Source: Mobula birostris (lineage: Eukaryota). Taken from it: a stretch of 64,000 nt of DNA. This document shows positions 11,990 to 58,688 of this stretch, piece by piece. The position numbers and the translations under genes were made by a program. The notes beneath the pieces were generated by a model. It had not been told where the DNA came from, made no database searches, and saw only the letters and a program-made list of their open reading frames with translations. Each line of letters begins with the position of its first letter. Positions within the stretch are counted from its first letter, which is position 1. The stretch is taken from assembly GCF_030028105.1 (NCBI RefSeq), contig NC_092379.1:46486150-46550149 (forward strand), given 5' to 3'.

Positions 11990-12270
11990 TCCAAAACCAC
12001 ATCAGTCTCTTTGTAAAATACATGGCCCGCACCTCTCTTTTCAATTTTCCCTCTCACCATCAATGCATGCCCTCTAGTATTACACATTTCAATCCTGTTG
12101 AAACATTTCGGCTTCCTGCAATTTATATGCTTCCCATAATTTTCTAACGTGCTCTCAGGTCGCCCCTTCGTAGGCCACTCAAGTATAAACAACTCTAGTT
12201 TCCACAAGCTCTCCTTATACGAACATTACCTCTAATCTGGACAGAATCCTTATAAACCTCTTCCGCACAT
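11990..12270 (-). mobile_element. CR1 LINE 3' fragment, decayed
   Basis: NRIEMCNTRGHALMVRG (ORF 11953-12207) is the CR1 ORF2 C-terminal motif TRGH. Confidence 0.6.
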
Positions 12271-12294
12271 ATCAAATTGCAACTTTAGTTCCTG

Positions 12295-15200: not shown

Positions 15201-15760
15201 CACAGGCCATCGGTGGTTGCTGCGTTGTCTACTAATGAGTTCTGCCTGAAATACCGGCCGGGGAGTCGGTACATTGATTGCAATGCGCAGACACGGCTTG
15301 CGCATCAAGCCCTTGGCAGGGACGAGGAGTGGGGAACGTTCATGCCCCTGGAGTGAAAGCAATGTGCCAGTTTTCCATCACGGAGAAGGCAGGGGAAAGG
15401 CTGAGCGTGCTTGAAGAACTTAAGAGCGGCTTCGGGCTGGGCGACGAAATCAGGGCTGCAGCGATTTGCTGGGCAGCGTGCTCTTGTCCCAGGGCCTTCC
15501 AAGTCAATGGTACCTGGGTCGCAGTGCGAAGTAGAATTAAAACGCCGACCCAAATTGCAGACGAGAGCCGATTTCGTTCGCACTCCGCGATGTTCAGTCC
15601 TCTCTTCAGGGTGCCAGAGCCTTTCGCTGTTCCGTCGTTGGGTCAATTTAAACCTTGAGCCAGATAGACTGACAAGATACGGTATCGGTCGGGACGAGAG
15701 ATGATTTCGCTCGGTCTCAACGATGGTCATCTCAATAGCGCTGAGACTATAAAGACTGCT
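12295..15760 (+). mobile_element. Ty3/Gypsy LTR retrotransposon internal region (PNMA-like gag, protease, RT, RNase H), decayed and truncated before the integrase core
   Basis: Gag SFVELIRELREE and knuckle CDNCGEEKHFRWEC; protease FDTGCQVT; RT PYASLIMV...MCVDY...DQYTVP...MDVRSGYYQ and LLYLDDL; RNase H LHTDES and LEFLALKWAV. Many stops and frameshifts. Confidence 0.9.
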
Positions 15761-15947
15761 CCGGCTGCTGTGCTCCGTGCCCGCTAATAAGATGAATGGA
15801 TCAGCGAAGCTTTGGGTCTACTCCGGGGTGCTCCGGGGTTCGGATCTGAGGACTCATTTTTGGTTTGGAATGCCGTTACTCGCTTCAATTGTTTGCATGC
15901 CGTCTATTTTTGTCATTCTCTTGTGCATCGAGTCTTTCGTTAATAAG

Positions 15948-16095
15948 AGAAAACCTGCAGATGCTGGAATTCCAAGCAATACACACAAAAAAAAAGTCTT
16001 GATGAAGGGTCCGGTCCCAAGCATCGACTGTGTACTTCTTGTCCACTGATGCTACCTGGCCTGCTGAGTTCGCCAACATTTTGTCTGTGTTGCTT
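15948..16095. mobile_element. Penelope tail fragment in inverted (fold-back) arrangement
   Basis: CTGCAGATGCTGGAATTCCAAGCAATACACACAAAA is the reverse complement of the PLE tail end. It is followed by a forward tail with a decayed hammerhead. Confidence 0.65.
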
Positions 16096-16245
16096 GGTCT
16101 CTTATTTTTTTATTGATATTCTTTTTACTTTAAATTGTATTCTTTCAGATTTCTTGCTTTGTCGCTGCCGGGAAGCAAGAACATCTGAAGGACGTGTAAT
16201 TTCTACATTCTTTATTAACAAATGTACTTGAATATGAATATATAT

Positions 16246-18951: not shown

Positions 18952-19961
18952 TGTATCTCATCAGTAACGTCGGAGGTTCTGGTACGGAACAACATTAGTG
19001 ACGTACTTGCAAGCAGAGCCATCAATCAACTACTGCAGTCTGTCTTCGGTAGGTAACACAGTCATGAATCTAAACGGCCAAGTCACCATGGATAGCATGC
19101 TTCTTAATCCTCTGTACGAGTCTCCCATGAGTGGCGTTCTCGCATATCTCCCTAAAACCAACGTAGACATATTCTAAATTTCTACCTTTATCAATCATCT
19201 CCATCACCTTCTTGAAAACTTCAATACTGATACAAGTGATGACCTGCCTCGCACAAAGCTATGCTGATTATCCCTAACTAAGCTATGCTTTTCCAAATGC
19301 TCATAAATTCTATTTCTAAGAATCCTCTACATCAGTTTCCCTGCCACTGACAATAAGATCCACCAATCTATTATTTCCAGATTAACGCCATTTCCATTCC
19401 TGAATAAAGGAATAACATCCCCCCCGCCACCAAAAAAAAAGCTTGTTCCCTCAGGGTGTGAGAATAATGAATACTCAACCAACACCTATGTATCGTCTCT
19501 AGGACAGCGGACTGCTTACTGTACTGTTTACTACTTATCTGCGCTCCGCATTACTACATACATTTTGAATTATATTTTACTAAAATATTTATAGTATACT
19601 TTGGTGTTTTGTATGTGTGTGGTATATGTTGTGTGGATGCACCGTCGTCCGGAGGCACGTTGTTTCGTTTCGTTGTATATATGTACACTCAAATGACAAT
19701 AAACGAACTTCAAGTTGAACTTGTACAAATATGTTGGTCATGGCGCCAGCAATCACCATTCTCGCCTTTCTCTAGAATACTTCAGTAGGCCCTGCAAACA
19801 CTTCAAGACGAATGGTTTTAAAGACATTCCTAATCTTGAAATGTCCTGACAAATTAGCATGCTCCACTCTGGTCTCAAGACCCTCTAATTCTCTCCTCTT
19901 GGTAAAAACATATGCAAAGTACACTTTAGGACTGCACGTTAATAATCGCTCTCCAAAAGCA

Positions 19962-20506
19962 TGCTACACACATCAAAGTTGCTGGTGAATGCAGCAGGCC
20001 AGGCAGCATCTCTAGGAAGAGGTACAGTCGACGTTTCAGGCCGATACCCTTCGTCAGGACTAACTGAAGGAAGAGTGAGTAAGGGATTTGAAAGTTGGAG
20101 GGGGAGGGGGAGATCCAAAATGATAGGACAAGACAGGAGGGAGAGGGATGGAGCCAAGAGCTGGACAGGTGATTGGCAAAGGGGATACGAGAGGATCATG
20201 GGACAGGAGGTCCGGGGAGAAAGACAACGGGGAGAGAACCCAGAGGATGGGCAAGGTGTATAGTCAGAGGGACAAAGGGAGAAAAAGGAGAGTGAGAGAA
20301 AGAATGTGTGCGTAAATATAAATAACAGATAGGGTACAAGGGGGAGGTGGGGCATTAGTGGAAGTTAGAGAAGTCGATGTTCATGCCATCAGGTTGGAGG
20401 CTACCCAGACGGAATATAAGGTGTTGTTCCTCCAACCTGAGTGTGGCTTCATCTTTACAGTAGAGGAGGCCGTGGATAGACATGTCAGAATGGGAATGGG
20501 ATGTGG
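19962..20506 (-). mobile_element. Penelope-like element 3' end, well preserved
   Basis: Reverse strand of 20358-20506 reads SHSHSDMSIHGLLYCKDEATLRLEEQHLIFRLGSLQPDGMNIDFSNF, followed by the tail. Confidence 0.9.
20025..20062 (-). ncRNA. Minimal type I hammerhead ribozyme (PLE-associated)
   Basis: Minus strand TAGTC-CTGACGA-AGGGTATCGGCCT-GAAA-C-GTC^GACTG: intact CUGANGA and GAAA boxes, stem I AGTC/GACT, stem II AGG/CCT and a GUC cleavage triplet. Confidence 0.75.
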
Positions 20507-23257: not shown

Positions 23258-24034
23258 GTAAGCGATATATTTTATTACATTTTGAGCAAGCACGTACTTT
23301 TCCCCGAGGTCAAGTATAATTATATTCTCGTTTAAATGATGCAAACCGAAAAGGGCAATATGATAATGTATTTTTGGAGTGTAAGCATTTCACTAAGACA
23401 CCCCAGAAGAATTGAAGTATACACCTTTCTCCTCCCAAGATAATACCTTCGCTCGTTAAAAAAAAACGAAAATTGGAGTATTTTTACAAATTGAAGCACC
23501 CAAATTACCCTCGACCTCCTGCACCCCAACCCCGTCCGACGGTTACTTTAAAGTATTACCTGCTGTATTGATGTAAGTGCGAGGTCCTCATATCTTGGCA
23601 AATTTGAGTGTGGATTTACACCCCGATGATCGCAGACCCACGCAGTAAAGTACTTTAGATGAAATAGGTTTCAGATCAGAAAGAGATTGATAGCTTAATA
23701 ATTTGAGACTTCGACGGGATTGTTAAAACATATACTCATTCCGAAAACAACTAGTCATTCAGCTGGAATAGAAGAAAAAATGTCTTCTATTTCGAAACAC
23801 ATATCATGCTCTAACAAATCCATACATTTAGTGAGCGCCTGGAAAACCAGGTTGAAACAAGTTTTATGTTGTCAGAATCGTTGGGCTTGTATAACTTTGG
23901 TTATATTTTAGTGTCAGTTGTCAGAGTATTTGCGGGGCGGGGGCAGATGTAGGCTAAAGGTCTGTGTGCAAGGTCGGAAAAGATACTGAATGAATGTCAA
24001 CATAATCAATAGCGTCTTTGAAAGCGGAGCACAA

Positions 24035-27000
24035 TAGACATATACATAGACATAGAATAGTACAGCACATTACAGGCCCTTCGGCCCACAATATTGTGCC
24101 GACCCTCAAATCCTGCCTCTCATATAACCCCCCACCTTAAATTCCTCCATATACCTGTCTAGTAGTCTCTTAAACTTCACTAGTATATCTGCCTCCACCA
24201 CTGACTCGGGCAGTGCATTCCACACACCAACCACTCGCTAAGTAAAAAACCTTCCTCTATTATCCCCCTTGAACTTCCCACCCCTTACCTTAAAGCCATG
24301 TCTTCTTGTATTGAGCAGTGGTGCCCAGAGGAAGAGGTGCTGGCTATCCACTCTAGGTCTTCCTCTTATTATCTTGGACAACTCTATCATGTCTCCTTTC
24401 ATCCTCATACTCTCCAAAGAGTAAAGCCCTAGCTGCCTTAATCTATGATTATAATCCATACTCTCTAAACCAGGCAGCATCCTGGTAAATCTCCTCTGTA
24501 CCCTTTCCAATGCTTCCACATCCTTCCTACAGTGAGGCGACAAGAATTGGACACAGTACTCGAAGTCTGGCCTAACCAGAGTTTTACAGAGCTGTATCAT
24601 TACATCGTGACTCTTAAACTCTATCCCTCGACTGATGAAAGCTAACACCCCATAAACTGTCTTAACTACCCTATCTACCTGTGAGGCAACTTTTAAGGAT
24701 CTGTTGGCATGTACCCCCAGATCCCTCTGCTCCTCCACACTACCAAGTATCCTGCAATTTACTTTGTACTCTGCCTTGGAGTTTGACCTTTCAAAGTGTA
24801 CCAACTCACACTTCTGGTTGAACTGCATCTGCCACTTCTCAGCCCACTTCTTCATCCTATCAATGTCTCTCTGCAATCTTCGACAATCCTCGACATTATC
24901 TGCAACACCACCAACTTTTGTGTCATAGAAACATAGAAACATAGAAAATAGGTGCAGGAGGTGGCCATTCGGCACTTCGAGCCTGGACCGCCATTCAGTA
25001 TGATCATGGCTGATCATCCAACTCAGAACCCTGTACCAGAGTTCCCTCCATACCCCCGATCCCTTTAGCCACAAGGGCCATATCTAACTCCCTCTTAAAT
25101 ATAGCCAATGAACTGGCCTCAACTGTCTCCTGTGGCAGAGAATTCCACAGATTCACCACTCTCTGTGTGAAGAAGTCTTTCCTAATCTCGGTCCTAAAAG
25201 GCTTCCCCTTTATCCTCAAACTGTGACCCCTCGTTCTGGACTTCCCCAACATCGGGAACAATCTTCCTGCATCTAGTCTGTCCAATCCCTTTAGGATTTT
25301 ATACGCTTCAATCAGATCCCCCCCTCAATCTTCTAAATTCCAACGAGTATAAGCCTAGTTCATCCAGTCTTTCATCATATGAAAGTCCTGCCATCCCAGG
25401 AATCAATCTGGTGAACCATCTTTGTACCCCCTCTATGACAAGGATGTCTTTCCTCAGATTAGGGGACTAAAACTGCACACAATACTCCAGGTGTGGTCTC
25501 ACCAAGGCCTTGTACAACTGCAGTAGTACCTCCCTGCTCCTGTACTCGAATCCTCTTGCTATAAATGCCAGCATACCATTCGCCTTTTTCACCGTCTGCT
25601 GTACCTGCATGCCCACTTTCAATGACTGGTGTATAATGACACCCAGGTCTCGTTGCACCTCCCCTTTTCCTAATCGGCCACCATTCAGATAATAATTTGT
25701 TTTCTTGTTTTTGCCACCAAAGTGGATAACTTCACATTTATCCACATTAAATTGCATCTGCCATGAATTTGCCCACTCACCTAACCTATCCAAGTCACCC
25801 TGCATCCTCTTAGCATCCTCCTCACAGTTAACACTGCCGCCCAGCTTCGTGTCATCCGCAAATTTGGAGATGCTGCATTTAATTTCCTCATCCAAGTCGT
25901 TAATATATATTGTAAACAACTGGGGTCCCAGCACTGAGCCTTGCGGTACCCCACTAGTCACTGCCTGCTATTCTGAAAGGGCCCCGTTTATTCCCACTCT
26001 TTGCTTCCGATCTGCCAACCAACTCTCTATCCACATCAATACCTTACCCCCAATACCGTGTGCTTTAAGTTTGCACACTAATCTCCTGTGTGGGACCTTG
26101 TCAAAAGCCTTTTGAAGATCCAAATATACCACATCCACTGGTTCTCCCCTGTCCACTCTACTAGTTACATCCTCAAAAAATTCCATGAGATTCGTCAGAC
26201 AGGATTTTCCTTTCACAAATCCATGCTGACTTTGTCCGATGATATCACCGCTTTCCAAATGTGCTGTTATCACATCTTTGATAACTGAGTCTAACAGTTT
26301 CCCCACCACCAATGTTAGGCTAACCGGTCTATAAATCCCTGGTTTCTCTCTCCCTCCTTTTTTAAAAGGTGGAGTTACATTAGCCATCCTCCAATTCTCA
26401 GGAACTGGTCCAGAATCTAAAGAGTTTTGAAAAATTATCACTAATGCATCCACTATTTCTTGGGCTACTTCCTTAAGCACTCTGGGATGCAGACCATCTG
26501 GCCCTGGGGATTTATCCGTCTTTAATCCCTTCAATTTACCTAAAAACTTTTACAGTCAGTTTTTATGTTCCCTGCTAGCATTCTCTCTAAATCTTTTTTC
26601 CCTTTCTTAATTAAGCCCTTTGTCCTCCTCTGCTGGACTCGGGATTTCTCCCAGTCCTCAGGTGAGCCACTTTTTCTGGCTAATTTGTATGCTTCTTCTT
26701 TGGAATTGATACTATCCCTAATTTCCCTTGTCAGCCACGGGTGCACTACCTTCCTTGATTTATTCTTTTGCCAAACTGGGATGAACAATTGTTGTAGTTC
26801 ATCCATGCGATCGTTAAATGCTTGCCATTCCATATCCACCGTAATCCCTTTAAGTGTCATTTGCCAGTCTATGTTAGCTAATTCACGTCTCATACCTTCA
26901 AAGTTACCCTTCTTTAAGTTCAGAACCTTTGTTTCCGAATTATCTATGTCACTCTACATCTTAATGAAGAATTCCACCATATTATGGTTACTCTTACCCA

Positions 27001-30000
27001 AGGGGCCTCTCATGACAAGATTGCTAATTAACCCTTCCTCATTGCTCAATACCCTGTCCAGAATAGCCTGCTCTCTAGTTGGTTCCTCGACATGTTGGTT
27101 CAAAAAACCATCCCGCATACATTCCAAGAAATTCTCTTCCTCAGCACCCTTACTAATTTGCTTCACCCAATCTACATGTAGATTGAAGTCACCCATTATA
27201 ACTGATGTTCCTTTATTGCACACATTTCTAACTTCCTGTTTAATACCATCCCCAACCTCACTACTACTGTTAGGTGGCCTGTACACAACTCCCACCAGCG
27301 TTTTCTGCCCCTTAGTGTTATGCAGCTCTACCCATATCGACTCCACATCTTCCCAGCTTATGTCCTTCCTTTATATTGCATTAATCTCCTCTCTCACAAA
27401 CAACGCCACCTCACCTCCTTTTCTTTCATGTCTATCCCTCCTGAATATTGAATATCCCTGAATGTTGAGCTCCCATCCTTGGTCACCCTGGAGTCATGTC
27501 TCTGTGATCCCAACTACATCATATTCATTAATAACAATCTGCACTTTTAATTCATCCACCTTGTTACGAATGCTCCTTGCATTGACACACAAAGCCTTCA
27601 GGCGCGCTTTTACAACACTCTTAGCCCTTATACAATTATGTTGAAAAGTGGCCCTTTTTGATGCTTGCCCTGGATTTGTCTGTAAACTTGCCAACCCACC
27701 CTTCCACCCCGACATCCAGGTCGTCAATAAAAATCACGAAAATTAGAGGTCCCAGAACAGACCTTATGAGACACCACTAGTCACAATCCTCCAATCTGAA
27801 TGTACTCCCTCCACCACCACCCTCTGCCTTCTGCAGGCAAGACAATTTTGAATCCACCTGGCCAAACTTCCGTGGATCCCATGCCTTCTAACTTTCTGAA
27901 TAAGCCTACCATGTGAAGCCTTGTCAAATGCCTTACTAAAATCCATATAGATCACATCTACTGCACTACCCTCATCTATATTCCTGGTCACCTCCTCAAA
28001 GAACTCTATCAGGCTTGTTAGACACGATCTGCCCTTCACAAAGCCATGCTGACTGTCCCTGATCAGACCATGATTCTCTAAATCCCTATAAATCTTATCT
28101 CTAAGAATCTTTTCCAACAGCTTTCCCACCACAGACGTAAGGCTCACTGATCTATAATTACCCGGACTATTCCTACTACCATTTTGAACAAGGGGACAAC
28201 ATTCGCCTCCCTCCAATCCTTCGGTACCATTCCCGTGGACAACGAGGATATAAAGATCCTAGCCAAAGGCTCAGCAATCGCTTCCTTCGCCTCATGGAGC
28301 AGCCTGGGGAATATGCCGTCGGGCCCCGGCGGCTTATCCGTCCTAATATATTTTAACAACTCCAAGACCTCCTCTCCCTTAATATCAACATGATCCAAAA
28401 CATCAACTTCACTCATTTTGTCCTCACCATCATCAAGTTCCGTCTGGTTGGTGAATACCGAAGAGAAGTATTCATTGAGGACCTCGCTCACTTCCACAGC
28501 CTCCAGGCACATCTTTCCACCTTTATCTCTGATCGGTCCTACCTTCACTCCTGTCATCCTTTTGTTCTTCACATAATTGAAGAATGCCTTGGGGTTTTCC
28601 GTTACCCTACTCTCCAAGGCATTCTCATGCCCCCTTCTTGCTCTGTTCAGCCCCTTCTTGAGTTCCTTTCTTGCTTCCCTGTATTCCTCAATAGACCCAT
28701 CTGATCCTTGCTTCCTAAACCTCATGTATGCTGCCTTCTTCCACCTGACTATATTTTCCACCTCACTTGTCAACCATGGTTCCTTCAGCTACCATCCTTT
28801 ATCTTCCTCACCGGGACAAATTTATCCCTAACCTCCTGCAAGAAATCTTTAAACATCGACCACATGGCTATAGTACATTTCCCTGCAAAAACATCATGCC
28901 AATTCACACCCGCAAGTTCTAGCCTTAGAGCCTCATAATTTGCCCTTCCCCAATTTAAAAAAATCCTGTCTTCTCTGATTCTATCCTTTTGCATGATAAT
29001 GCTAAAAGCCAGGGAGCGGTGGTCACCGTCCCCCAGATGCTCACCCACTGACTGATCTGTGAATTGACCCGGTTCATTACCGAGTACTATATCTAATATG
29101 GCATACCTCCTAGTCGGCCTGTCCACATACTGTGACAGGAATCGCTCCTGGACAGACTTAACGAACTGTGCCCCATCTAAACCCTTGTAACTAAACAGGT
29201 GCCAATCAGTATCAGGGAAGTTAATGTCACCCATGATAACAACCCTGTTATTTTTGCACCTTTCCTAAATCTGCCTCCCAATCTGCTCCTCTGTATCTCT
29301 GCTGCTACCAGGGGGCCTATAGAATACCCCAATAGAGTAACTGCTTCCTTCCTGTTCCTGACTTCCACCCATACTGACTCAAAAGCGGATCCTGCTACAT
29401 TACCCACCCTTTCTGTAGCTGTAATAGTATCCCTGACTAGGAATGCCACCCCTCCTCCCAGTCCCCCCCCCCCCATCCCTTTTAAAGCACTGAAATCCAG
29501 GAATATTGAGAATCCATTCCTGCCCTGGTGTCAGCCAAGTCTCTGTAATGGCCATTACATCATAATTCCATATAGGTATGCAAGCTCTCAGTTCATCACC
29601 TTTGTTCCTGATGCTCCTTGCATTGAGGTACACACACTTCAGCCCTTCTACCTTACTACCTTTACACCCTTTATTCTGCTTCTCTTTCCTCAAAACCTCG
29701 CCATACGTTAGATCTGGCTTTACTCCACACACTTCTTTCACTACTCTATCGCTCAGGGTCCCATCCCCCTTGCAAATTAGTTTAAACCCTCCCGAACCAT
29801 GCTTGCAAACCTAGCTGCAAGGATATTGCTTCCCCTTGAGTTCAGGTGCAATCCATCCAATCTGTACAGGTCCCACATTCCCCAGAAGAGATCCCAATGA
29901 TCCAAAAATCTAAAACCCTGCTCCCTGCACCAACTCGTCAGACACGCATTCAACTTCCATCTCCTCCAATTCTTGCCATCACTGTCACGTAGCACTGGCA

Positions 30001-33529: not shown

Positions 33530-34420
33530 TGCGACTAATATATATCATCATCGTCAAATTTAAAAGTACATATACGTCATCATACACAAACCTGAAATTA
33601 ATTTTCTTGCGGGCATTCACATCAGACACCACGAAACACAATAGAATCAATGAAAACCCGCACACATTAAGACGGACAACGAAAGGGCAAAATGCAAACT
33701 GTGCAAATCAAACAGGAAAAAAAACAAATAATATAAATAAACAATAAGTATCGTCAACATGAGATGATTTTTTTTAAACTGAGCACATAGGTTGTGAGAA
33801 CAGTTCAATGTCAGGGGGAATGAAGTTGAACGAAGGTAGTCCTTCTGGTTAAAGAACCCGATGTCGAAGGGGTAACATTTGTTTCCGAACCAATTAGTCT
33901 GTGTACCTAGGCTTCTGTACCTCCCTCCTGATGGCGGCAACGAGAAGAGAGCGTGGCCTGGAACCTGAGGGTCCTTGAAGATAAATGCACATTCCTGCGA
34001 CAGCGCTGCGTATAGATGCGCTTAATAGCGGGGAAGGTTGTATTCGTCATGAACTGTGCTGTTTCCACGACCACTTTTTTGTAGGCGGTTCGTTCAAGGC
34101 CATTGATATTTCCATACCAGACCGTAATGCAATCAGTCAGTATACTCCCCACCGCACCTCTACGTAAGTGTGTCAAAGTTTTCGATGACATGCCGCATCT
34201 TCTCAAACTTTTAAGAGAGTAGTGCTTTCTTTCTAAGGGCACTTACCAGCTGGACTCTGGATAGATCCTCTGAAATGATTACGCAAAGGAATTTGAAGTT
34301 GCTAACTCTCTCCACCTCTGACCCCTAGATGAGGACCTGCAGATGGACCCGCGGTTTTCTCCTCCCGTAGTCAATAATCAACTCCTTGGTCTTGCTGACA
34401 TTGAGTGACAGATGTTATTC
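33530..34420 (-). mobile_element. Rex1/Babar-type LINE 3' fragment
   Basis: SLRRCGMSSKTLTHL...SILTDCITVWYGN and PSGGRYRSL (ORFs 33907-34242, 33647-33940). Confidence 0.8.
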
Positions 34421-42174: not shown

Positions 42175-44640
42175 ACAGGAACAGGAAGGGAGCAGTTACT
42201 CTACTGGGGGTATTCTATAGGCCCCCTGGTAGCAGCAGAGATACAGAGGAGCAGATTGGGAGGCAGATTTTGGAAAGGTGCAAAAATAACAGGGTTGTTA
42301 TCATGGGTGATTTTAACTTCCATAATATTGATTGGCACCTGATTAGTTCCAAGGGTTTAGATGGGGCAGAATTTGTTAAGTATGTCCAGGATGGATTCCT
42401 GTCACAGTATGTGGACAGGCCGACCAGGGGGTAATGCCATACTAGATCTAGTACTAGGTAATGAACCGGGTCAGGTCACAGATCTCTCAGTGGGTGAGCA
42501 TCTGGAGGACAGTGACCACCGCTCCCTGGCCTTTATAATTATCATGGAAAAGGATAGAATCAAAGAGGACAGGAAAATTTTTAATTGGGGAAAAGCAAAT
42601 TATGAGGCTATACGGCTAGAACTTGCGAGTGTGAATTGGGGTGATATTTTTGCAGGGAAATTTACTATGGACATGTGGTCGATGTTTAGAGATATCTTGC
42701 GGCATGTAAGGGATAAATTTGTCCCGGTGAGGAAGATAAAGAATGGCAGGGTGAAGGAACCATGGGTGACAAGTGAGGTGGAAAATCTAGTCAGGAGGAA
42801 GAAGGCAGCATACATGAGGTTTAGGAAACAAGGATCAAATGGGTCTATTGAGGAATATAGGGAAGCAAGAAAGGAGCTTATGAAGGGGCTGAGAAGAGCT
42901 AGACGGGAGCATGAGGAGGCCTTGGTGAGTAGGGTAAAGGAAAACCCCAAGGCATTCTTCAATTATGTGAAGAAAAAAAGGATGACAGGATGAGAGGGAA
43001 CTTGATGATGGTGAGGACAATATGAGTGAGGTTGATGTTCTGGAGCATGCTGATATTAAGGGAGAGGAGGTGTTGGAGTTGTTAAAATACATTAGGACAG
43101 GTAAGTCCCCGGGGCCTCACGGAATATTCCATGAGGCGAGAGAAGAGATTGCTGAGCTTCTGGCTAGGATCTTTACATCCTCGTTGTCCACGGGAATGGT
43201 ACCGGAGGGTTGGAGGGAGGCGAATGTTGTTCCCTTGTTCAAAAAAGGTAGTAGGGATAGTCCGGGTAATTATAGACCAGTGGGCCTTACGTCTGTGGTG
43301 TGACAGCTGTTGGAAAAGAGTCTTAGAGATAGGATCTATAGGCATTTAGAGAATCATGGTCTGATCAGGGACAGTCAGCATGGCTTTGTGAAGGGCAGAT
43401 CGTGTCTAACAAGCCTGAGAGAGTTCTTTGAGGAGGTGACCAGGGATATAGATGAGGGTAGTGCAGTATATGTGATCTATATGGATTTTAGTAAGGCGTT
43501 TGACAAGGTTCCACATGGTAGGCCTATTCAGAAAGTTAGAAGGCATGGGATCCAGGGAAGTTTGGCCATGTGGATTCAGAATTGGCTTGCCTGCAGAAGG
43601 CAGAGGGTGGTGGTGGAGGGAGTACATTCAGATTGGAGGATTGTGACTCGTGGTGTCCCACAAGGATCTGTTCTGGGACCGCTACTTTTCGTGATTTTTA
43701 TTACCGACCTGGATGTGGGGGTTGAAGGATGGGTTGGCAAGTTTGCAGACGACACAAAGGTTGGTGGTGTTGTAGATAGTGTAGAGGATTGTCAAAGATT
43801 GCAGAGAGACATTGATAGGATGCAGAAGTGGGCTGAGAAGTGGCAGATGGAGTTCAACCCAGAGAAGTGTGAGGTGGTACACTTTGGAAGGACAAACTCC
43901 AAGGCAGAGTACGAAGTAAATGGCAAGATACTTGGTAGTGTGGAGGAGCTGAGGGATCTCGGGGTGCATGTCCACAGATCCCTGAAAGTTGCCTCACAGG
44001 TGGATAGGGTAGTTAAGAAAGCTTATGGGGTGTTAGCTTTCATACGTCGAGGGATAGAGTTTAAGAGTCACGATGTAATGATGCAGCTCTATAAAACTCT
44101 GGTTAGGCCACACTTGGAGTACTGTGTCCAGTTCTGGTCGCCTCACTATAAAAAGGATGTGGAAGCATTGGAAAGGGTACAGAGGAGATTTACCAGGATG
44201 CTGCCTGGTTTAGAAAGTATGCATTATGATCAGAGATTAAGGGAGCTAGGGCTTTACTCTTTGGAGAGAAGGAGGATGAGAGGAGACATGATAGAGGTGT
44301 ACAAGATAATAAGAAGAATAGATAGAGTGGATAGCCAGCGCCTCTTCCCCTGGGCACGACTGCTCAATACAAGAGGACATGGCTTTAAGGTAAGGGGTGG
44401 GAAGTTCAAGGGGGATATTAGGGGAAGGTTTTTAACTCAGAGAGTGGTTGGTGCGTGGAATGCACTCCCTGAGTCAGTGGTGGAGGCAGATACACTAGTG
44501 AAGTTTAAAAGACTACTAGACAGGTATATGGGGGAATCTAAGGTGGGGGCTTATATGGAAGGCAGGGTTTGAGGGTCGGCACAACATTGTGGGCCGAAGG
44601 GCCTGTACTGTGCTGTACTATTCTATGTTCTATGTTCTAC
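42175..44640 (+). mobile_element. CR1 (HER1-type) LINE, 5'-truncated, RT largely intact
   Basis: APE from ~42175. 420-aa RT reading frame 43310-44572 (QHGF, DFSKAFDKV, QGSVLGP, FADDTK, TRGH). (TTCTATG)n tail. Same subfamily as copy A at 24-30 kb. Confidence 0.95.
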
Positions 44641-45437: not shown

Positions 45438-45775
45438 GTAAAGTAGAGAATGCTGACGCAGACGCAGATTCAGCTTTTGTTTGCATGGACCCGAAGTCAA
45501 ATGAAGACATCCAACTAATGGTGTCCGTCCTGATGAAGGTCTCGGGCCGTAAAGTCGATCGTTATTCTGCTCCATAGATGCTGCCTGACCTGCTGAGCTC
45601 CTCCAGTATTTTGCATGTTGCTCTGAATTTTCAGTATCTGCAGAATCTCTTGTGTAGATGATAACATCAGACAGCTGAATTTATAATAGCATTGATGCTG
45701 TGTGTGTGAATTTATAGTTTTGTTTCTCTTTATCCTATCAGTTTGTTTCTGAATTCTGCTATGTCAATGACTGGT
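45438..45775 (+). pseudogene. Possible decayed IgNAR membrane-proximal/transmembrane exon split by a Penelope tail
   Basis: Strong acceptor (TTCCCTGTTCTTGTTCTATCATTGCAG). Splicing from C3 gives SKVENADADADSAFVCMDPKSNEDIQLM in frame. A PLE tail occupies ~45525-45656. After it come DDNI and, out of frame, FIVLFL (45711-45728). Confidence 0.25.
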
Positions 45776-47689
45776 TTTGGTTGGAATTTCACAGAACATT
45801 TGCAAAGCAATGAAATGCAAAGTGTATTCCTCTGAATAATATAAAATAAACTGGGGTGAAATAATTGTCCAGCAGTGAAAGATTGCAATCTACCACAAAT
45901 GTGAAAGAATTAAATGCACCTTGCAATCTGGTATTGCAATTTCATACTTCAACAAAACTATCAGTTTAGTCTGACCTTATGAGCGGCGCCCTCTCTTACT
46001 ATCCATATTCACTGACAAAGGAAAACTTACGAGTTGTTTCGAACTGACTCTTCGTATCTTCTCCATTGTCTGCATTTCAAAATAATGTTTATACTCAAGG
46101 TTCTGCACTAAGAAACGGCTACTGAATTAAGTAAACTATAATTCTCTCTGTCCAGCAGTTTAATCAGTTACTTTCCTTTATAAAAGAAAAATTAAATTGG
46201 AGGGTGCGTGATTATAACTCGCAAACCACGTGGAAATATTATAAAGCAATTGCGCAAATAACAAAACTTGAAGGATATCTATTGGATTTTGGAAGTAATT
46301 GCATTGTTCCATTTAAGTGATTCTATCAGACTGGAATTCTACAAAGGAATATACTGATTACGACTTCTGTTTATGCTTATTGATACTTTGCCAGGAGAGT
46401 AGCTATTCCATACGCTGCGTGTCTGCAGTTCCGAATAAATTACAAAGCTTTTCTGGCGCTAATACATGGGATGGTGCCCAGTCACATAATGTATATTCAA
46501 GACCTCAAATAAAGCAAACAATTACCTGTCAATCAGTCCCCTTTAGTGTTCATCCACCTTCCCTTTCACCCACGGCATTCTGTCCTCTCCTATCAGATTT
46601 CCCCTTCCTCAGCCCTTTATCTCTTTCACCAATCAACTTCCCAGTTCTTTACTAGAAACCTTCCCCGTCCCGGTGTCTCCCATCACCAGCCATCTTGTAC
46701 TTCTTCTTCCCCTCTTCTCACCCTCTTATTCTAAATTCTCCCCTTCCTTTCCAGTCCTAATAAATGGTCTTTGCCCGAAACATCGAGTGTTTACTTTTGT
46801 CCATAGATGTTGCCTGGCCTGCTGAGTTCTGCCAGCATTTTGTGTGCGTTGCAAACAAATGAGCATGCTGTGCTCCAAAGTAGAACCAGCTTTACTTTTT
46901 CCTACAGGAGTACTTATTATAATAATAATTATTATAATACTCTGACGTATTATTGCCAAATGTCAACAAAGAGATTGCAGTATAATGCTAATTGACTGCT
47001 TTTTTAACCATTGAAAATTCCGGTCTAAAATTCATATGCCTACAAATACTTTTTTTAAAAAAATACTGTATCTATTTCAATGCTACACTGACTATTGATA
47101 AAACCGAACCACAATGCTAATTAAATCCGCATGATGAGTAAAGGAAATAAGGTAAAGATTCAACTCAGACAAGCAACGTCTTTTGAAGCAGAGGATCAAT
47201 CAAATAATTTTCTGGAGATTTTACCGTGTTACAAAAAAAAACGGAAATTATTAAACCAGTGTAATTAATTTTGGTTATGAATATTACAAATTAATTAAAT
47301 ATTCTACCTTAATCGTACGTTAATAATATTAATCAAGTTGTTTGCTTATCGTTGTCGACTAGATGTAATCAGTAACTTTCCAAACAGATGTTTTAAATGT
47401 ATCAAGAACATTTAAATAAATTTTAACCATATTTGAATTAAAGTGAAAGAGTGGCACTTGTAAATTGTTGTTTCAATGCGTTTTGTAATATACTATTTGA
47501 TATTTGGATACATTCATCAAAATGATTGTTTATTTTTCATTGAAACTATTATCAAATATTGTCGTATGAAAGTCAGGGTTAAAATAATCTGTGTCACAAA
47601 ATCATAACATGAGCGAATGAAGTAAAGTTTAAAAAGTTCGTGCAATGGTTCATTCGTTCAGTCACAACAGGATGCGGTGGAATTTTAGT

Positions 47690-50861: not shown

Positions 50862-51383
50862 TGTCAGGACGCTGGGGCAGTGATTCAATCGCAGACCCTG
50901 CACTGTGCACACAGTAGGTTTAATTGAGTAACAAATCCTGAGGTGTAAACAAAGTCGGCGTCAAAGTTCAGGCAGAGATCTAAAAATCCAAAGAAATCCA
51001 AAAACCAGAATCGGGGAAACAGGCAGAGTCGATATTCAGACGGACAGAGTTCAGATACGAATGCTGGAAAGGCTCAGGAAAACTCACTGGTACAATCTGG
51101 CAACAATCAGTTGAAAACACAGGACTAAAATACACTGAGCAATAAACAGAGAGGCAGTTGATAGGTGGAGCACAACGCGACAGAAGTGGCAGCAAAATAG
51201 AGAATAAAGAGAAACAGGTGAGAGGCGGAGTACTCAGTAATATAGGCACCGGAGTAGAGCAGAAGCTGGGACAGGAGCACATGGAGCATGAAAACAAACA
51301 AGAGGACATGGCAATACAAAACCACAGACTGACGGCTGAGGGAAAACACACAATAAGACAAAGTTTAACTGGAGGTACTGACA
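50862..51383 (-). mobile_element. Solo LTR (Gypsy-type)
   Basis: Termini TGTCAG...CTGACA, 522 bp, interrupting the LINE. No clean TSD. Orientation is inferred. Confidence 0.7.
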
Positions 51384-51644
51384 AAATCTTAGTACCCGGA
51401 TGGGCTCAGTGTTTTCTATGTTCACTTGACCATCAAAACATGGTTGATCCTTCACGAACTCACACAGACCACAGATGGGTTACGTGGCTCAGTGTTAAAA
51501 ACCTGTGATGATCAACTGGCTGAGATGTTCACCAATAATTCTAAATTCTCACGTCGGCATTCTGAGGTACCTCCATTTTCTTTTAGCAGTTTGAGAAGAT
51601 TCGGCAGGTCATCTAAAAATTTGACAAACTTCTGTAGATCTGTG

Positions 51645-54600
51645 TGTCATAAGGGCACGGCTGGGAATGGACCCAAGTGCAAGACACAGACACTGAAGTA
51701 CTAGGGACAGGACTAGGACACAGGACGATGGCAAGGACATGGACAGGACAACCAGGAATCTGGAACAGGACTGAACAAGAGAGCTAGGAGCCCGGGCTTG
51801 GACTCCGAGCCAGAGACTGGACAAGGTCCCAGTATCTGGGTCTTACATCTGGCTCGGACCCCAGAACTAGGCAAGGATGAGGATGTTAGTCCTGACGAAG
51901 GGTCTCGGCCTGAAACGCCGACTGCACCTCTTCCTACAGATGCTGCCTGGCCTGCTGCGTTCACCAGCAACTTTGATGTGTGTTGCTTGAATTTCCAGCA
52001 TCTGCAGAATTCCTGTTGTTCAAGCATGAGGCTTGGCAGGCAGGCAGGATGAAGCTGGAGTCTTCAGGCTAGAAGCTAGAGGCCAGAGACTTGGCTTGGC
52101 TTGGCAAGAGGCTAGAGGCTAGAGACTTGGCTTGGCTTGGCAAGGGGCTAGAGGCTAGAGACTTGGCTTGGCTTGGCTTGGCAATAGGCTAGAGGCTGGA
52201 GTCTACAGGCTCGAGGCTAGGCAAGAGACGAGGCGGGGATTGGCAGGAGGCTGGAGACTTGAGACTAGAGGTGAGGCGAGGATAGATGCTGGAGACTTGA
52301 GGCGAGATGAGGCTGGAGGCTGGAGACCTGAGCCGAGGCGAAGCTGGAGACTTGAGGCGAGGCGAGGCTGGAGACTGGAGGCATGAGACGAGGCGAGGGG
52401 AGGCTGGAGACTTGAGGCGAGGCGACGCTGGAGGCCGGAGACTTGAGGCGAGGCGAGGCTAGAGGCCGGAGACTTGAGGCGAGGCGAGGCTAGAGGCCGG
52501 AGACTTGAGGCGAGGCGAGGCTAGAGGCCGGAGACTTGAGGCGAGGCGAGGCTAGAGGCCGGAGACTTGAGGCGAGGCGAGGCTGGAGGCCGGAGACCTG
52601 AGGCGAGGCGAGGCTGGAGGCCGGAGACCTGAGGCGAGGCGAGGCTGGAGGCCGGAGACCTGAGGCGAGGCGAGGCTGGAGGCCGGAGACCTGAGGCGAG
52701 GCGAGGCTGGAGGCAGGAGACTTGAGGCGAGGCGAGGCTGGAGGCAGGAGACTTGAGGCGAGGCTTGGCAGGCTCCTCCTGGGCTGGGAGCGGATCACCT
52801 GGGCAGGGCGCGGTACTCCTGTGCAGGGCGAGGATCACCACCCGACAGAGGCAAGGGACAGGAAGGGACAGAGCCAAGCCCAGGTAACGCAAGATGGCCT
52901 GGCTTACCTGGGCAGAGGCAAGGGACAGGAAAGGAGCTGGGAACAGGGTGGCTCCAGGACCAGACAGCAAGACAAGGCAAGGCTACTGGCAAAACAAGGC
53001 AAGACGACAACTTCAGGTGAGGCGAGAGTTACCGGCAAGACAAGGCAAGGCTTCAGGCAAGGAAACAGAAGGCAGGGGAAGGGATACAAGGAGTAATGAC
53101 AAGAACAATCCAGGAACCACACTCTGGTCTCTGGACGTATTTATGCAGCCAGCCCCAATGAGCATCAGCTGCCTCAATTAGCTCAACAAGGACAGAAACA
53201 GGGTAGATAGGAAGACCTGGAGCAAATGTTGATGGACCGGACCATGAACCGGAATAAGGACTTCATGGACCGGACCATGGCAGTACCGCACCCCCTCTAC
53301 GACCAGAATATCCAGACTGTGGACGACCCGGGTGGGTGGGAGGGTAATTGACAAAAAGGAACCCCGGGTGGCCAGAGAAAAATGACAATTTCTGTGTCGC
53401 TGGGTCCATGGTTGGCTGGATTTTTCTGTCATAAGGGCACGGCTGGGAACGGACCTAAGTGCAAGACACAGACACTCAAATACTAGGGACAGGACTAGGA
53501 CACAAGGCGATGGCCAGGACATGGACAGGAAAACCAGGAACGTGGAATAGGACTGAACAACAGAGCTAGGAGTCCGGTCTCGGACTCTGAGCCAGAGACT
53601 GGACCAGTACCCAGTACCTAGGTCTTGCATCTGGCTCGGACCCCAGAACTAGACAAGGACGAGGCTTGGCAGGCAGGTAGGACGAGGCTGGAGTCTTCAG
53701 GCTAGAAGCTAGAGGCCAGAGACTTGGCTTGGTTTGGCAAGAGGCTAGAGACTAGAGACTTGGCTTGGCTTGGTAAGACGCTCGAGGCTAGAGACTTGGC
53801 TTGGCAAGAGCCTAGAGGCTAGAGACTTGACTTGGCTTGGCTAGAGGCTAGAGGCTGGAGTCTACAGGCTCGAGGCAACGCAAGAGACCAGGCGAGGCTT
53901 GGCAGGAGGCTGGAGAATTGAGACTGGAAGGCAAGGCTGGAGGCTTGGGACAAGGCGAGGCAAGGCTGGAGACTTGAGGATGGGGACTGGAGTCGAGGTG
54001 AGGCGAGGCGAGGCTGGAGGCTGGAGACTTGAGGCGAGGCGAGGCTGGAGGCTGGAGACTTGAGGCGAGGCTGGAGGCTGGAGACTTGAGGCCAGGCGAG
54101 GCTGGAGGCTGGAGACTTGAGGCCAGGCGAGGCTGGAGGCTGGAGACTTGAGGCCAGGCGAGGCTGGAGGCTGGAGACTTGAGGCCAGGCGAGGCTGGAG
54201 GCTGGAGACTTGAGGCGAGGTGAGGCTGGAGGCTGGAGACTTGAGGTGAGGCGAGGCTGGAGGCTGGAGGCTTGAGGCAAGGCTTGGCAGGCTCCTCCTG
54301 GGCAAGGCGTGGATCACCTAGGCAGAGTGCGGTACTCCTGGGCAGGGCACGGTACTCCTGGGCAGGGCGCAGATCACCACCCGACAGAGGCAACGGACAG
54401 GAAAGGACAGAACCAACCCCAGGTAACGGCAAGACGGCCTAGCTTACCTGGGCGGAGGCAAGGGAGAGGAAGGGACAGAACCACCCCAGGTAAAGGCAAG
54501 ACGGCCTGGCTTACCTGGGCAGAGGCACAGGAAAGGAACTAGGTACAGGGTGGCTTCAGGACCAGACAAGAAGAAAAGTCAAGGCTACTGGCAAATCAAG

Positions 54601-57600
54601 GCAAGACGAGAACTTCAGGTGAGGGGAGAGTTACCGGCAAGACAACGCAGGGCTTCTGGCCAAGCAAGGTGAGACAGAACTTCAGGTGAGGCTCGAGTTA
54701 CCGGCAAGACAAGGCAAGGCTACAGGCGAGGAAACAGAAGGCAGGGGAAAGGGATACAAGGAGTAAGGACAGGAACAATCCAGCAACCACGCCCTGGTCT
54801 CTGGAGGTATTCATGCAGCCAGCCCCAACTAGCATCAGCTGCCTCAATTATTTCAACAAGGACAGAAACAGGGTAGATAGGAAAACCTGGAGCAAATGTT
54901 GATGGACCGGACCGTGAACCGGAATAAGGACCTCATGGACCGGTCCATGACAGTACCCCATCCCCTCTACGGGAGCCTCCTGGAGGCCAGAGTATCCAGA
55001 CTGTGGACGAACCGGGCGGGTGGGAGGGTAATTGACAGAAAGGAACCCCGGGTGGCCAGAGGAAAATGACAATTTCTGTGTCGCTGGGTCCATTGTTGGC
55101 TGGATATTTCTGTCATAAGGGCACGGCTGGGAACGGACCCAAGTGCAAGACACAGACACTGAAGTACTAGGGACAGGACTAGGACAGAAGGCGATAGCCA
55201 GGACATGGACAGGAAAACCAAGAACCTGGAATAGGACTGCACAAGAGAGCTAGGAGCCCGGTCTTGGACTCCGAGCCAGAGACTGGACAAGTACCCAGTA
55301 CCTGGGTCTTGCATGTCGCTCGGACCCCAGAACTAGGCAAGGACGAGGCTTGGCAGGCAGGCAGGACGAAGCTGGAGTCTTCAGGCTAGAAGCTAGAGGC
55401 CAGAGACTTGGCTTGGCTTGGCAAGAGGCTAGAGGCTAGAGACTTGGTTTGGCTTGGCAAGAGCCTAGAGACTGGAGACTTGGCTTGGCTGGGCAAGAGG
55501 CTAGAGGCTAGAGGCTAGAGACTTGGCTTGGCTTGGCAAGAGGCTAGAGGCTAGAGGCTGGAGTCTACAGGCTCAAGGCTAGGCAAGAGACGAGGCGAGG
55601 ATTGGCAGGAGGCTTGAGACTTGAGGTGAGGCGAGGCTGGAGGCTGGAGACTTGAGGCGAGATGAGGCTGGAGGCTAGAGACCTGAGGTGAAGTGAGGCT
55701 GGATGCTGGAGACTTGAGGCGCGGATTGGCAGGTTCCTCCTGGGCAGGGAGCGGATCACCTGGGCAGGGCGCGGCACTCCTGTGCAGGGCGAGGATCACC
55801 ACCCGACAGAAGCAAGGGACAGGAAGGGACAGAGCCAAGCCCAGGTAACGCAAGATGGCCTGGCTTACCTGGGCGGAAGCAAGGGACAGGAAAGGAGCTG
55901 GGAACAGGGTGGCTCCAGGACCAGACAGCAAGACAAGGCAAGGCTACTGGCAAAGCAAGGCAAGACGACAACTTCAGGTGAGGGGAGAGTTATCCACAAG
56001 ACAAGGCAGGGCTTCTGGCAAAGCAAGGCGAGACAGAACTTCAGGCGAGGTGAGAGTTACCAGCAAGACAAGGCAGGGCTTCAGGCAAAGCAAGGCGAGA
56101 CGGAAATTCGGGCGAGGCTCGTGTTACCGGCAAGACAAGGCAAGGCTTCAGGCGAGGAAACAGAGGGCAGGGGAAGGGATACAAGGAGTAAGGACAAGAA
56201 CAATCCAGGAACCACACCCTGGTCTCTGGAGGTATTCATGCAGCCAGCCCCAATGAGAATCAGCTGCCTCAATTACCTCAACAAGGACAGAAACAGGGTA
56301 GATAGGAAAACCCAGAGCAAATGTTGATGGACCGGACCGTGAACCGGAATACAGAGTTCATGGACCGGAGCATGACAGCACCCCTCCCCCTCTACGAGAG
56401 CCTCTTGGCGTCCAAACAGAGTATCCAGACTACGGACGACCCGGCCGGCTGGGAGGTTAATTGACAGAAAGGAACCCCTGGTGGCCAGAGGAAAATGACA
56501 GTGTCTGTGTCGCTGGGTCCATGGTTGGCTGGATTGTTCTGTCATAAGGGCACGGCTGGGAATGGACCCAAGTGCAAGACACAGACACTGAAGTACTAGG
56601 GACAGGACTAGGACACAGGACGATGGCCAGGACATGGACAGGAAAACCAGGAACCTAGAACAGGACTGAACAAGAGAGCTAGGAGCCCGGGCTTGGACTC
56701 CGAGCCAGAGACTGGATAAGGACTCAGTACCTGCATCTTGCCTCTGGCTCGGACCCCAGACCTAGGCAAGGACGAGGCTTGGCAAGCAGGCAGGACGAGG
56801 CTCTAGTCTTCAGGCTAGAAGCTTGAGGCTAGAGACTTGGCTTGGCAAGAGGCTCGAGGCTAGAGACTTGGCTTGGCTTGGCAAGAGGCTAGAGGCTAGA
56901 GACTTGGCTTGGCTTGACAATAGGCTAGAGACTAGAGGCTGGAGTCTACAGGCTCGAGGCCAGGCGAGAGACGAGGCAAGGCTGGCAGAAGGCTGGAGAC
57001 CTGAGACTAGAGACGAGGCTGGAGATGAGGCGAGGTGAGGCTGGAGGCTGGAGACTTGAGGCGAGGTGAGGCGAGGCTGGAGGCTTGAGGCGAGGCGAGG
57101 CTGGAGACTTGAGGCGAGGCGAGGCTGGAAGCTGGAGACTTGAGGGGAGGCGAGGCTGAAGGCTGGAGGCAGGAGACTTGAGGCGAGGTGAGGCTGGAGG
57201 CTGGAGGCTTGAGACTTGAGGCGAGGCTTGGCAGGCTACTCCTGGACAGGGCGCGGATCACCTGGGCAGGGCGCGGAACACCACCCAACAGAGACAAGGG
57301 ACAGGAAGGGACAGAACCATCCCCAGGTAAAGGAAAGACTGTCTGGCTTACCTCGGCGGAGGCAAGGAACAGGAAGGGACAGAATCAACCCCAGGTAATG
57401 GCAAGGCGGCCTAGCTTACCTCGGTGGAGGCAAGGGACAGGAAGGGACAGAAGCAATCCCAGGTAACTGCAAGACGTCCTGGCTTACCTGGGTGGAGGCA
57501 AGGGACAGGAAGGGACAGAACCAACCCAGGTAACGGCAAGACTGCCTGCCTTACCTGGGTGGAGGCAAGGGGCAGGAAAGGAGCTAGGTACGGGGTGTCT

Positions 57601-57996
57601 ACAGGACCAAGCAGCAAGACAAGTCAAGGCTACTGGCAAAGCAAGGTGAGATGAGAATCTTAGGTGAGGTGAGAGTTACCAGCAAGAAAAGGCAGGGCTT
57701 CAGGCAAAGCAAGGCGAGACAGGACTTCAGGCGAGGCTCAAGTTACCGGCAAGATAAGGCAAGGCTTCAGGCAAGGAAACAGAAGACAGGGGAAGGGATA
57801 CAAGGAGTAAGGATAAAAACAATCCAGCAAACACGCCCTGGTCTCTGGAGGTATTTATGCAGCCAGCCCCAACGAGCATCAGCTGCCTCAATTAGCTCAA
57901 CAAGAACAGAAATATGGTAGATCTGAAAACCTGGAGCAAGGTTTGATCGACCAGACCGTGAACTGGAATATGGACTTCATGGACCGGACCATGGCA
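51645..57996 (-). mobile_element. Tandem array of four LTRs with three miniature internal spacers (non-autonomous, TRIM-like)
   Basis: LTRs 51645-53282, 53427-54952, 55111-56377 and 56540-57996, each TGTCATAAGGGC...CATG(A/G)CA. Spacers 144, 158 and 162 bp. 5-bp TSD CTGTG/CCGTG around the whole array. Confidence 0.88.
51887..52022 (+). mobile_element. Penelope tail with hammerhead inserted into the first LTR
   Basis: TAGTCCTGACGAAGGGTCTCGGCCTGAAACGCCGACTG (triplet mutated to GCC). Flanked by the near-duplication CAAGGATGAGG/CAAGCATGAGG. Absent from the other three LTRs. Confidence 0.85.
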
Positions 57997-58688
57997 CCGT
58001 GGTGGAAAATACATTAACTGGTTGCATCACGACCTGGTACAGAAACAGCAACGTTCTGTAACGGTAAGCCTTACGAAAAGTAATAGATATGACCCAGTCT
58101 ATCAAGGGTATAACGCTCCCCACCATTCAGCACATCTACACGGAGAGCTGTCGCTAGAAGACTGCATCCATCAACAAGGACCCGCACCTCCCAGACCATG
58201 CTCTCGTCTCGCTGCTGCCATCAGGAAGGAGGTGCAGGAGCCTCGGGACACACGCCAACAGGTTCACGAACAGTTATTATCCCTCAACATCAGGCTGTTG
58301 AACCAATTGATATAGCTTCACTCAACTTCACTCATCCCATCACCGAACTGTTCCCACAACTCAATGATTCACTTTCAAGGACTCTTATCATGATAATTTC
58401 TTTATTTCTCCCTTTTGTATTTGCATAGTTTGGTCCATTTTGAACATTGGTTAGTTGTCCATCCTGTTGGGTACAATCTTTTATTGATTCTGTTTTTTCT
58501 TGGATTTACTGAGAATGCCCACAAAGAAACGAATCTCAGAGTGGTATATGCCGATATGTTTTTTTTATATAATAAATTTACTTTGAAACTTGAACTTTGT
58601 AATTTAACACTAACTCCTAATGCACAGTCATGCCATATTGAAACACAAAGGATCCCAGTACTAGTCCCCGTGGAACACTAGTTAACAC

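Follow-up and report, generated by a model that had tools for sequence, protein, structure and literature searches.

A tandem array of a protein-less, putatively self-priming LTR retroelement in Mobula birostris that probably grew in place after a single insertion

Introduction

Arrays in which neighbouring retroelement copies share their long terminal repeats (LTRs) are recognised as an intermediate that links dispersed retroelements with satellite DNA. TRIMs, or terminal-repeat retrotransposons in miniature, are defined as elements of less than 1 kb whose terminal repeats measure 100-250 bp (PMC6934838), and arrays of the form LxI(x-1), in which LTRs alternate with interiors, are known from plants as tandemly arrayed TRIMs (TA-TRIMs) and Cassandra (10.1101/010850, PMC7215508), and from bivalves as biv-TRIM arrays (PMC6934838). 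Tandems of full-size LTR retrotransposons occur in rice, Arabidopsis, almond and cotton (PMC11899658), tandem Tf1/Tf2, Ty1 and Ty5 copies have been described in yeasts together with cases in Drosophila (PMC11042837), and a KERV megasatellite has been reported in kangaroos (Koga et al. 2023, cited in PMC11899658). How such arrays form is debated, with unequal recombination, recombination of complementary DNA (cDNA) and tandem insertion all having been proposed (PMC11899658, PMC11042837), and for LxI(x-1) arrays the usual explanation is unequal or illegitimate recombination between LTRs (10.1101/010850; PMC6934838; PMC11899658). Here we describe an array of four LTRs and three short interiors on the minus strand of a 64-kb window of Mobula birostris DNA (contig NC_092379.1, positions 46,486,150 to 46,550,149; all coordinates below are those of the window), which is a non-autonomous, protein-less LTR retroelement and which, in our assessment, probably grew at its present site from a single insertion.

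The locus has the structural features of an LTR retrotransposon, namely direct LTRs with TG...CA ends, a 5-bp target site duplication (TSD), a primer site and a polypurine tract (PPT), and its alternating LTRs and interiors, shared inner LTRs and single TSD are those by which LTR-retrotransposon tandems have been defined (PMC11899658). An initial annotation, made from the sequence, called it TRIM-like, which is apt functionally, as the element is gene-less and non-autonomous, but not in LTR size, which is 5-16 times the TRIM limit, or in its primer site, which is probably of the self-priming type. The non-coding 144-162-bp interior that ends in a PPT and the LxI(x-1) arrangement are as in TRIMs, whilst a monomer with two LTRs would measure about 2.7-3.4 kb and the primer site complements the element's own LTR, not a tRNA. 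The annotation also held that such arrays are described mainly in plants and invertebrates, a view at odds with the kangaroo KERV, fission-yeast Tf1/Tf2 and Drosophila cases (PMC11899658, PMC11042837).

Results

The array occupies positions 51645-57996 and has the layout LTR-i-LTR-i-LTR-i-LTR (L4I3), with inner LTRs shared between neighbouring units. A repeat search and Tandem Repeats Finder showed the region from 51.6 to 58.0 kb to be a fourfold repeat of about 1.4-1.8 kb packed with minisatellites, and we set the LTR boundaries by a motif search for the LTR start and the LTR end. The resulting boundaries are identical to the coordinates proposed initially and uphold the proposed layout. Along the window the parts are LTR-A (51645-53282, 1638 bp), spacer i1 (53283-53426, 144 bp), LTR-B (53427-54952, 1526 bp), spacer i2 (54953-55110, 158 bp), LTR-C (55111-56377, 1267 bp), spacer i3 (56378-56539, 162 bp, the most divergent of the spacers) and LTR-D (56540-57996, 1457 bp), all on the minus strand. 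That strand is the sense of the element, so the order in sense is D-i3-C-i2-B-i1-A, with LTR-D the 5'-most LTR, LTR-A the 3'-most, and LTR-B and LTR-C the inner pair. The plus-strand orientation was tried and rejected, since it offers no TGG-type or other primer site after an LTR and no purine tract before one.

All four LTRs carry the short inverted ends TG(C/T)CAT...ATGACA in sense. The two outer LTRs both start TGCCATGG, with TGCCA, and the inner ones start TGTCATG (LTR-B, TGTCATGG; LTR-C, TGTCATGC), which bears out the reported difference between outer TGCCA and inner TGTCA starts. LTR sequence accounts for about 90% of a unit, which leaves an interior of about 150 bp. Within the LTRs lie five blocks of minisatellites, of variable copy number, whose periods are 36, 31, 20, 68 and 67 bp. 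Variable internal repeats had been held responsible for the lengths of the LTRs, and the five blocks do vary in this way, but LTR-A also owes part of its length to a 143-bp insertion. The array region has a GC content of 0.56-0.59 with a strong purine skew on the plus strand, its units diverge from one another by 6-11.5%, and the rest of the 64-kb window contains no further copies of the unit.

The insertion in LTR-A (51883-52025) resembles a short interspersed nuclear element (SINE), is absent from LTRs B, C and D, and is flanked by a 6-bp duplication, ATGAGG (51877-51882 and 52026-52031). Both copies of this duplication have an A-specific T at a position where B, C and D have C, and the SINE-like insertion is therefore later than the divergence of LTR-A. 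The window contains at least seven further copies of the SINE-like repeat, the most similar of them (93% identity) lying at 19960-20064 and others at 45527-45646, 15995-16096, 46753-46852 and 6714-6813; Rfam assigns the repeat to no RNA family.

The array is flanked by CTGTG on the left (51640-51644) and CCGTG on the right (57997-58001), which agree at 4/5 positions, the mismatch being C/T at a CpG. It sits within an older interspersed repeat (flanks 51245-51644 and 57997-58396), of which the window holds a second, paralogous copy on the minus strand (33791-34218) with 69-83% identity. This copy is uninterrupted at the insertion point and serves as an empty-site reference, and the five bases that end the left flank and the five that open the right flank both align to its positions 34153-34157. 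Since both flanks overlap the same five bases of an uninterrupted paralog, the 5-bp duplication is real and records one insertion, and the single TSD claimed initially is thereby validated. The TSD of Tf1 is likewise 5 bp long. To judge from its reading frame, the host repeat may be the C-terminal, or 3', part of ORF2 of a long interspersed nuclear element (LINE) common in cartilaginous fish such as sharks and rays.

To compare the LTRs we cut them at conserved anchors, aligned blocks outside the minisatellites or at their first unit, and counted differences over 869 gap-free, non-minisatellite columns. The overall divergences are 6.0% for A-C, 8.5% for B-C, 8.7% for A-B, 9.6% for A-D, 11.3% for C-D and 11.5% for B-D. 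The outer pair is thus not the closest overall (9.6%, against 6.0% for A-C), and the test that had been named beforehand, whether the outer LTRs are sisters, went against them, with A-D exceeding A-C, B-C and A-B over these columns.

The relationships among the LTRs are mosaic and change along their length. In the U5-terminal 232 bp the informative sites are split 6:0:0 in favour of AD|BC, and it is A and D that differ least, by 5.6%, with 13 differences against 17-24. The next 381 bp have informative sites of 9:0:0 for AC|BD, and in the middle blocks S4+S5 A-C differ by only 2.6%, compared with 15.7% for A-D; the heterogeneity of A-D between S4+S5 and the U5 block gave a Fisher p=0.001. In the U3-terminal 256 bp three sites favour AD|BC and an equal number AC|BD, LTR-D has 16 private changes and A-D stand at 9.8%. 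Over the U3 half as a whole (447 bp) LTR-D is the outlier, with 35 private changes against 6-13 in the other LTRs. The site types are clustered along the LTR in a non-random manner (runs-test permutation p=0.04). The spacers show a comparable imbalance, i1-i2 differing by 6.9% and i3 from i1/i2 by 11.8-12.7%. The TGCCA start shared by the outer LTRs is one site of this mosaic and may perhaps be an ancestral state.

The spacers contain both a primer site and a PPT, as the initial annotation had claimed. A purine tract abuts the next LTR in sense, with a PPT-like AGAGGGG(A/G)... motif 5-8 nt before each downstream LTR; the tract of i1 lies at 53283-53301 and that of i2, at 54953-54970, is GTAGAGGGGATGGGGTAC in sense, the very sequence that had been offered as an example. 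At its other end each spacer begins directly after the LTR end ATGACA, and the combination of this LTR end with the primer site was found only at the three junctions when the window was searched. The putative primer sites are GAAAAATCCAGC in i1 (53415-53426), GAAATATCCAGC in i2 (55099-55110) and GAACAATCCAGC in i3 (56528-56539), all on the minus strand. A tRNA-type primer binding site (PBS) is absent from these junctions, where the sequence after the LTR, GAA(A/C)(A/T)ATCCAGC, lacks the TGG start, and ARAGORN found no tRNA gene in the window.

What the 12 nt after each LTR do complement is the LTR itself. In all 12 spacer-by-LTR combinations the best complement lies at LTR sense position 169, which is 30 nt past position 139, where a TATA-like motif reads ATAAATA in the outer LTRs and ATGAATA in the inner ones. 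Complementarity is complete (12/12) between i3 and LTR-B, the i3 site being the exact complement of positions 169-180 of that LTR, and reaches 9-11/12 in the remaining combinations; in a control with shuffled LTRs, 0/2000 reached 12 and 11/2000 reached 11. The putative transcript start and self-primer of LTR-B is GCTGGATTGTTC (54773-54784), with its TATA-like ATGAATA at 54808-54814, and the corresponding primer-like sites and TATA-like motifs lie at 56198-56209 and 56233-56239 in LTR-C and at 57817-57828 and 57852-57858 (ATAAATA) in LTR-D, again on the minus strand. Judged from sequence, the primer site is probably of the Tf1/sushi self-priming type, in which the 5' end of the element's own transcript acts as the primer, a group on which Butler et al. 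reportedly worked in 2001. Self-priming of this type occurs from fission yeast to vertebrates (PMC4600332, PMC6317226). Transcription would then start near LTR position ~169, and if self-priming holds, U3 is only about 168 nt long and nearly the whole LTR, including the minisatellites, is R-U5. No poly(A) signal of the form AATAAA or ATTAAA, by which the R/U5 boundary might be placed, is present in sense in any of the four LTRs.

A small hairpin, CCTCTGG-CCA-CCAGGGG, is conserved in the middle of the spacers (56475-56491 in i3, minus strand, and at the same place in i1 and i2). It lies about 45 nt past the primer site and might be part of an RNA structure needed for self-priming.

The array is a non-autonomous, protein-less LTR retroelement that lacks coding capacity. 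The spacers had been credited with a gag start, reading MDPA in two of the three. The underlying sequence ATGGACCCAGCG is in fact present in all three, but the proposed gag identity gains no support from homology, as a search of the 47-aa spacer open reading frame (ORF) against 1.84 billion representative proteins returned only two matches (E~1e-4), both spurious, one to a bacterial CarboxypepD_reg repeat protein and one to a protein without a Pfam domain. The array contains no gag/pol capacity, and its other ORFs are translations of minisatellites only. An Rfam scan of 51000-58600 gave only a sub-threshold mir-31 match and detected no Cassandra-like 5S, tRNA or ribozyme module.

No autonomous partner was found within the 64-kb window. 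A decayed gypsy-like remnant on the plus strand (12000-18800, GC 0.50-0.55) has no sequence in common with the array and shows weak RT_RNaseH_2 (ORF 14400-15011) and Integrase_H2C2 (ORF 17958-18533) matches below the Pfam cut-offs; no LTR pair for it could be found within 9-22 kb. We considered this remnant as the partner and rejected it on account of its weak domain matches, its want of LTRs and the absence of shared sequence. Elsewhere in the window, a 420-aa plus-strand ORF with an RVT_1 domain (43310-44572, E=3e-28), in a GC-skewed region at 42-44 kb, is probably a LINE copy. The region 24000-30000 has a strong negative GC skew of -0.34 to -0.38, and its long minus-strand ORFs at 24238-25074 and 28144-28773 have no Pfam match and may be repeat-derived.

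Public sequencing runs from four organisms and four studies contain words of the stretch. We compared the reads with positions 51445-57444, which stops short of the last 552 bp of LTR-D and of the right flank, and they supplied only unitigs of 60-140 nt. The summed word depth is very high over the LTRs, and the SINE-like insertion has by far the greatest depth, in all four organisms; the depth fits an abundant family and is not a copy number. Many contigs, with all four runs represented, stop at 52020, the apparent 3' end of the SINE-like insertion.

Discussion

We put at roughly 60% the probability that the array goes back to a single insertion and then grew in place by recombination between its LTRs. 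The pathway and the order of events that we infer would be as follows. An integrase-type insertion of one protein-less LTR element into the older interspersed repeat would have created the one 5-bp TSD. The LTRs of this element would have measured about 1.3-1.6 kb and its interior about 150 bp; it would have had the minus strand as its sense and would have belonged to a family that probably primes itself with the 5' end of its own transcript and relies on an autonomous partner. The resident copy would then have grown from two LTRs to four by homologous recombination through its long LTRs, the route being unequal exchange of misaligned LTRs together with, at a later time, one or more exchanges resembling gene conversion between LTR-A and LTR-C. 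LTR-D and i3 would retain the oldest state, with B/C and i1/i2 as later duplicates and the mid-LTR exchange between A and C as the most recent event. The array is now old and inert.

Several of the observations fall into place if this is so. Because the LTRs account for about 90% of the unit, a misalignment by one unit keeps near-full homology. The U3 end of the 5' LTR, LTR-D, is anchored in the flank and is never copied, so that unequal exchange predicts LTR-D as the outgroup there, as is seen, and it also predicts that the last-made parts, i1/i2 and B/C, should be most alike, which they are. Halfway along the LTR, A and C are nearly identical, and this requires a later exchange between non-adjacent units. 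As for its age, the 6-11.5% divergence between units and the SINE inserted in LTR-A mark the array as old, and at ordinary vertebrate neutral rates the divergence of about 10% between the outer LTRs would correspond to some tens of millions of years.

There are nonetheless findings that weigh against growth in place by unequal exchange. In the U5-terminal 232 bp it is the outer LTRs that are closest, where pure unequal exchange predicts LTR-A as the outgroup, and a model of unequal exchange with a molecular clock fits the five branch lengths poorly (a rough fit, ~p=0.01). This poor fit means that an extra conversion event or another mechanism is needed, and gene conversion can explain the closeness of A and D at the U5 end. 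The comparison also rests on only four sequences and ~870 sites, with no outgroup copy to polarise the changes, and no orthologous or allelic locus with another number of units was seen, the reads giving only short unitigs.

A second route, to which we would give perhaps one third of that weight, is that cDNA of the family recombined into a resident two-LTR copy independently of integrase, through homology in the LTRs and primer site. This is the Rad52 single-strand-annealing route, which adds units and leaves the flank-adjacent ends and the single TSD untouched, and it would account for the two asymmetries together. The ends anchored in the flanks would belong to the resident copy, making the U5 end of LTR-A sister to that of LTR-D, and a separate lineage, made up of B, C, i1, i2 and the U3 half of LTR-A, would leave D and i3 as the outliers. 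It has a precedent in Tf1, whose cDNA makes mosaic tandems sharing one LTR at pre-existing related copies, in wild isolates too (PMC11042837), and the array family appears, from its sequence, to have the same self-priming signature. The pathway has, however, been demonstrated in yeasts only, and gene conversion within the array gives the same site patterns, an exchange between A and C being evident anyway. On four sequences, in the absence of outgroup copies that might show the seemingly foreign variants to be states of a subfamily, conversion within the array and a cDNA donor are inseparable. That retrotransposition intermediates, in the form of family cDNA entering a resident copy, built the array in place of sister-chromatid slippage is a tentative proposal, which we consider rather unlikely.

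A ready-made multimer is less probable still. The initial annotation suggested that the array had been mobilised as a multimer, which could have come from read-through transcription of a source array or of a one-LTR circle, or from a cDNA concatemer, and a possibility of this kind has been kept open for plant tandems (PMC11899658). The single TSD would be expected from such an insertion, the outer LTRs have TGCCA, an intact ATAAATA box and six U5-end sites in common, and the lack of AATAAA/ATTAAA in the four LTRs fits weak termination. Reverse transcription, however, predicts outer LTRs that are identical over their full length, and the block-wise distances between A and D contradict this (15.7% in S4+S5, 9.8% at the U3 end and 5.6% at the U5 end), as does their overall distance of 9.6%, which is greater than that of three pairs involving inner LTRs, with LTR-D the outlier in the U3 half. 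The internal R regions and PPTs of a multimeric RNA would also be expected to favour shortening to monomers.

We regard it as very improbable that the array is an artefact of assembly or a simple segmental tandem duplication, a macrosatellite with no link to retrotransposition. The region is rich in minisatellites and is covered only by unitigs of 60-140 nt with no spanning long read. Its units, however, differ by 6-11.5%, which makes a collapse or expansion artefact unlikely, as well as in minisatellite copy number and in a SINE insertion carried by one of them, and diverged copies are not something that assemblers invent. Stretches specific to single units are matched without a difference by unitigs from the sample that is probably the source, and the array begins and ends exactly at LTR ends, its termini being TG..CA and its 5-bp TSD verified. 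A second copy nested within the first, which would likewise give AD|BC, was rejected as all three spacers are full-length and collinear.

Growth in place from one insertion remains our preferred account, and the locus by itself is an old, inert and ordinary example of its kind. The family to which it belongs in this ray is nevertheless an extreme case, with units that are about 90% LTR, an interior of about 150 bp and a self-priming signature. The integrase-independent single-strand-annealing route has been shown experimentally only for the self-priming Tf1 of fission yeast (PMC11042837), and were the cDNA route true here, the array would be the first vertebrate trace of that pathway and a retroelement route to satellite DNA.

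Among the known systems, TA-TRIMs, with Cassandra and biv-TRIM arrays included, resemble the array in being non-coding, in alternating LTRs with short interiors and sharing the inner LTRs, in their 5-bp TSDs and in having unequal recombination as their proposed origin. From its sequence the element would act as a TRIM does, being gene-less and mobilised in trans. It departs from them in that TRIMs are shorter than 1 kb and have repeats of 100-250 bp and a tRNA PBS, whereas the array has minisatellite-rich LTRs of 1.27-1.64 kb and a primer site that complements its own LTR, and its host is a cartilaginous fish. The LTR-retrotransposon tandems of rice and other plants are likewise arrays of LTRs and interiors within one TSD that derive from a single insertion (PMC11899658), and it is disputed whether illegitimate recombination or tandem insertion produced them (PMC11899658). 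Those tandems consist for the most part of full-size gypsy or copia elements and are young and polymorphic, whereas the array of the ray is gene-less, old and found in a vertebrate.

Tf1/Tf2 share with the array a PBS that complements the start of the element's own transcript, the transcript start being predicted in our case (PMC11042837; PMC4600332), as well as tandem copies with one LTR in common and a mosaic composition (PMC11042837). The array differs in being non-autonomous and known from non-coding sequence alone, with no reverse transcriptase or integrase for phylogenetic placement. In its RNA the predicted primer and PBS would also be more than 1 kb apart, compared with roughly 0.15 kb in Tf1.

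KERV reportedly provides a vertebrate array of provirus-like units that share LTRs, for which recombination between 5' and 3' LTRs is the proposed origin (Koga et al. 2023, cited in PMC11899658). KERV is reported to consist of full proviruses in huge centromeric arrays, whereas the array of the ray has four LTRs and lies at a dispersed, euchromatic-looking site. The array is a known kind of structure of unusual proportions, and what is distinctive about it is that about 90% of it is LTR built of minisatellites, that it carries a self-priming signature and that its host is a cartilaginous fish.

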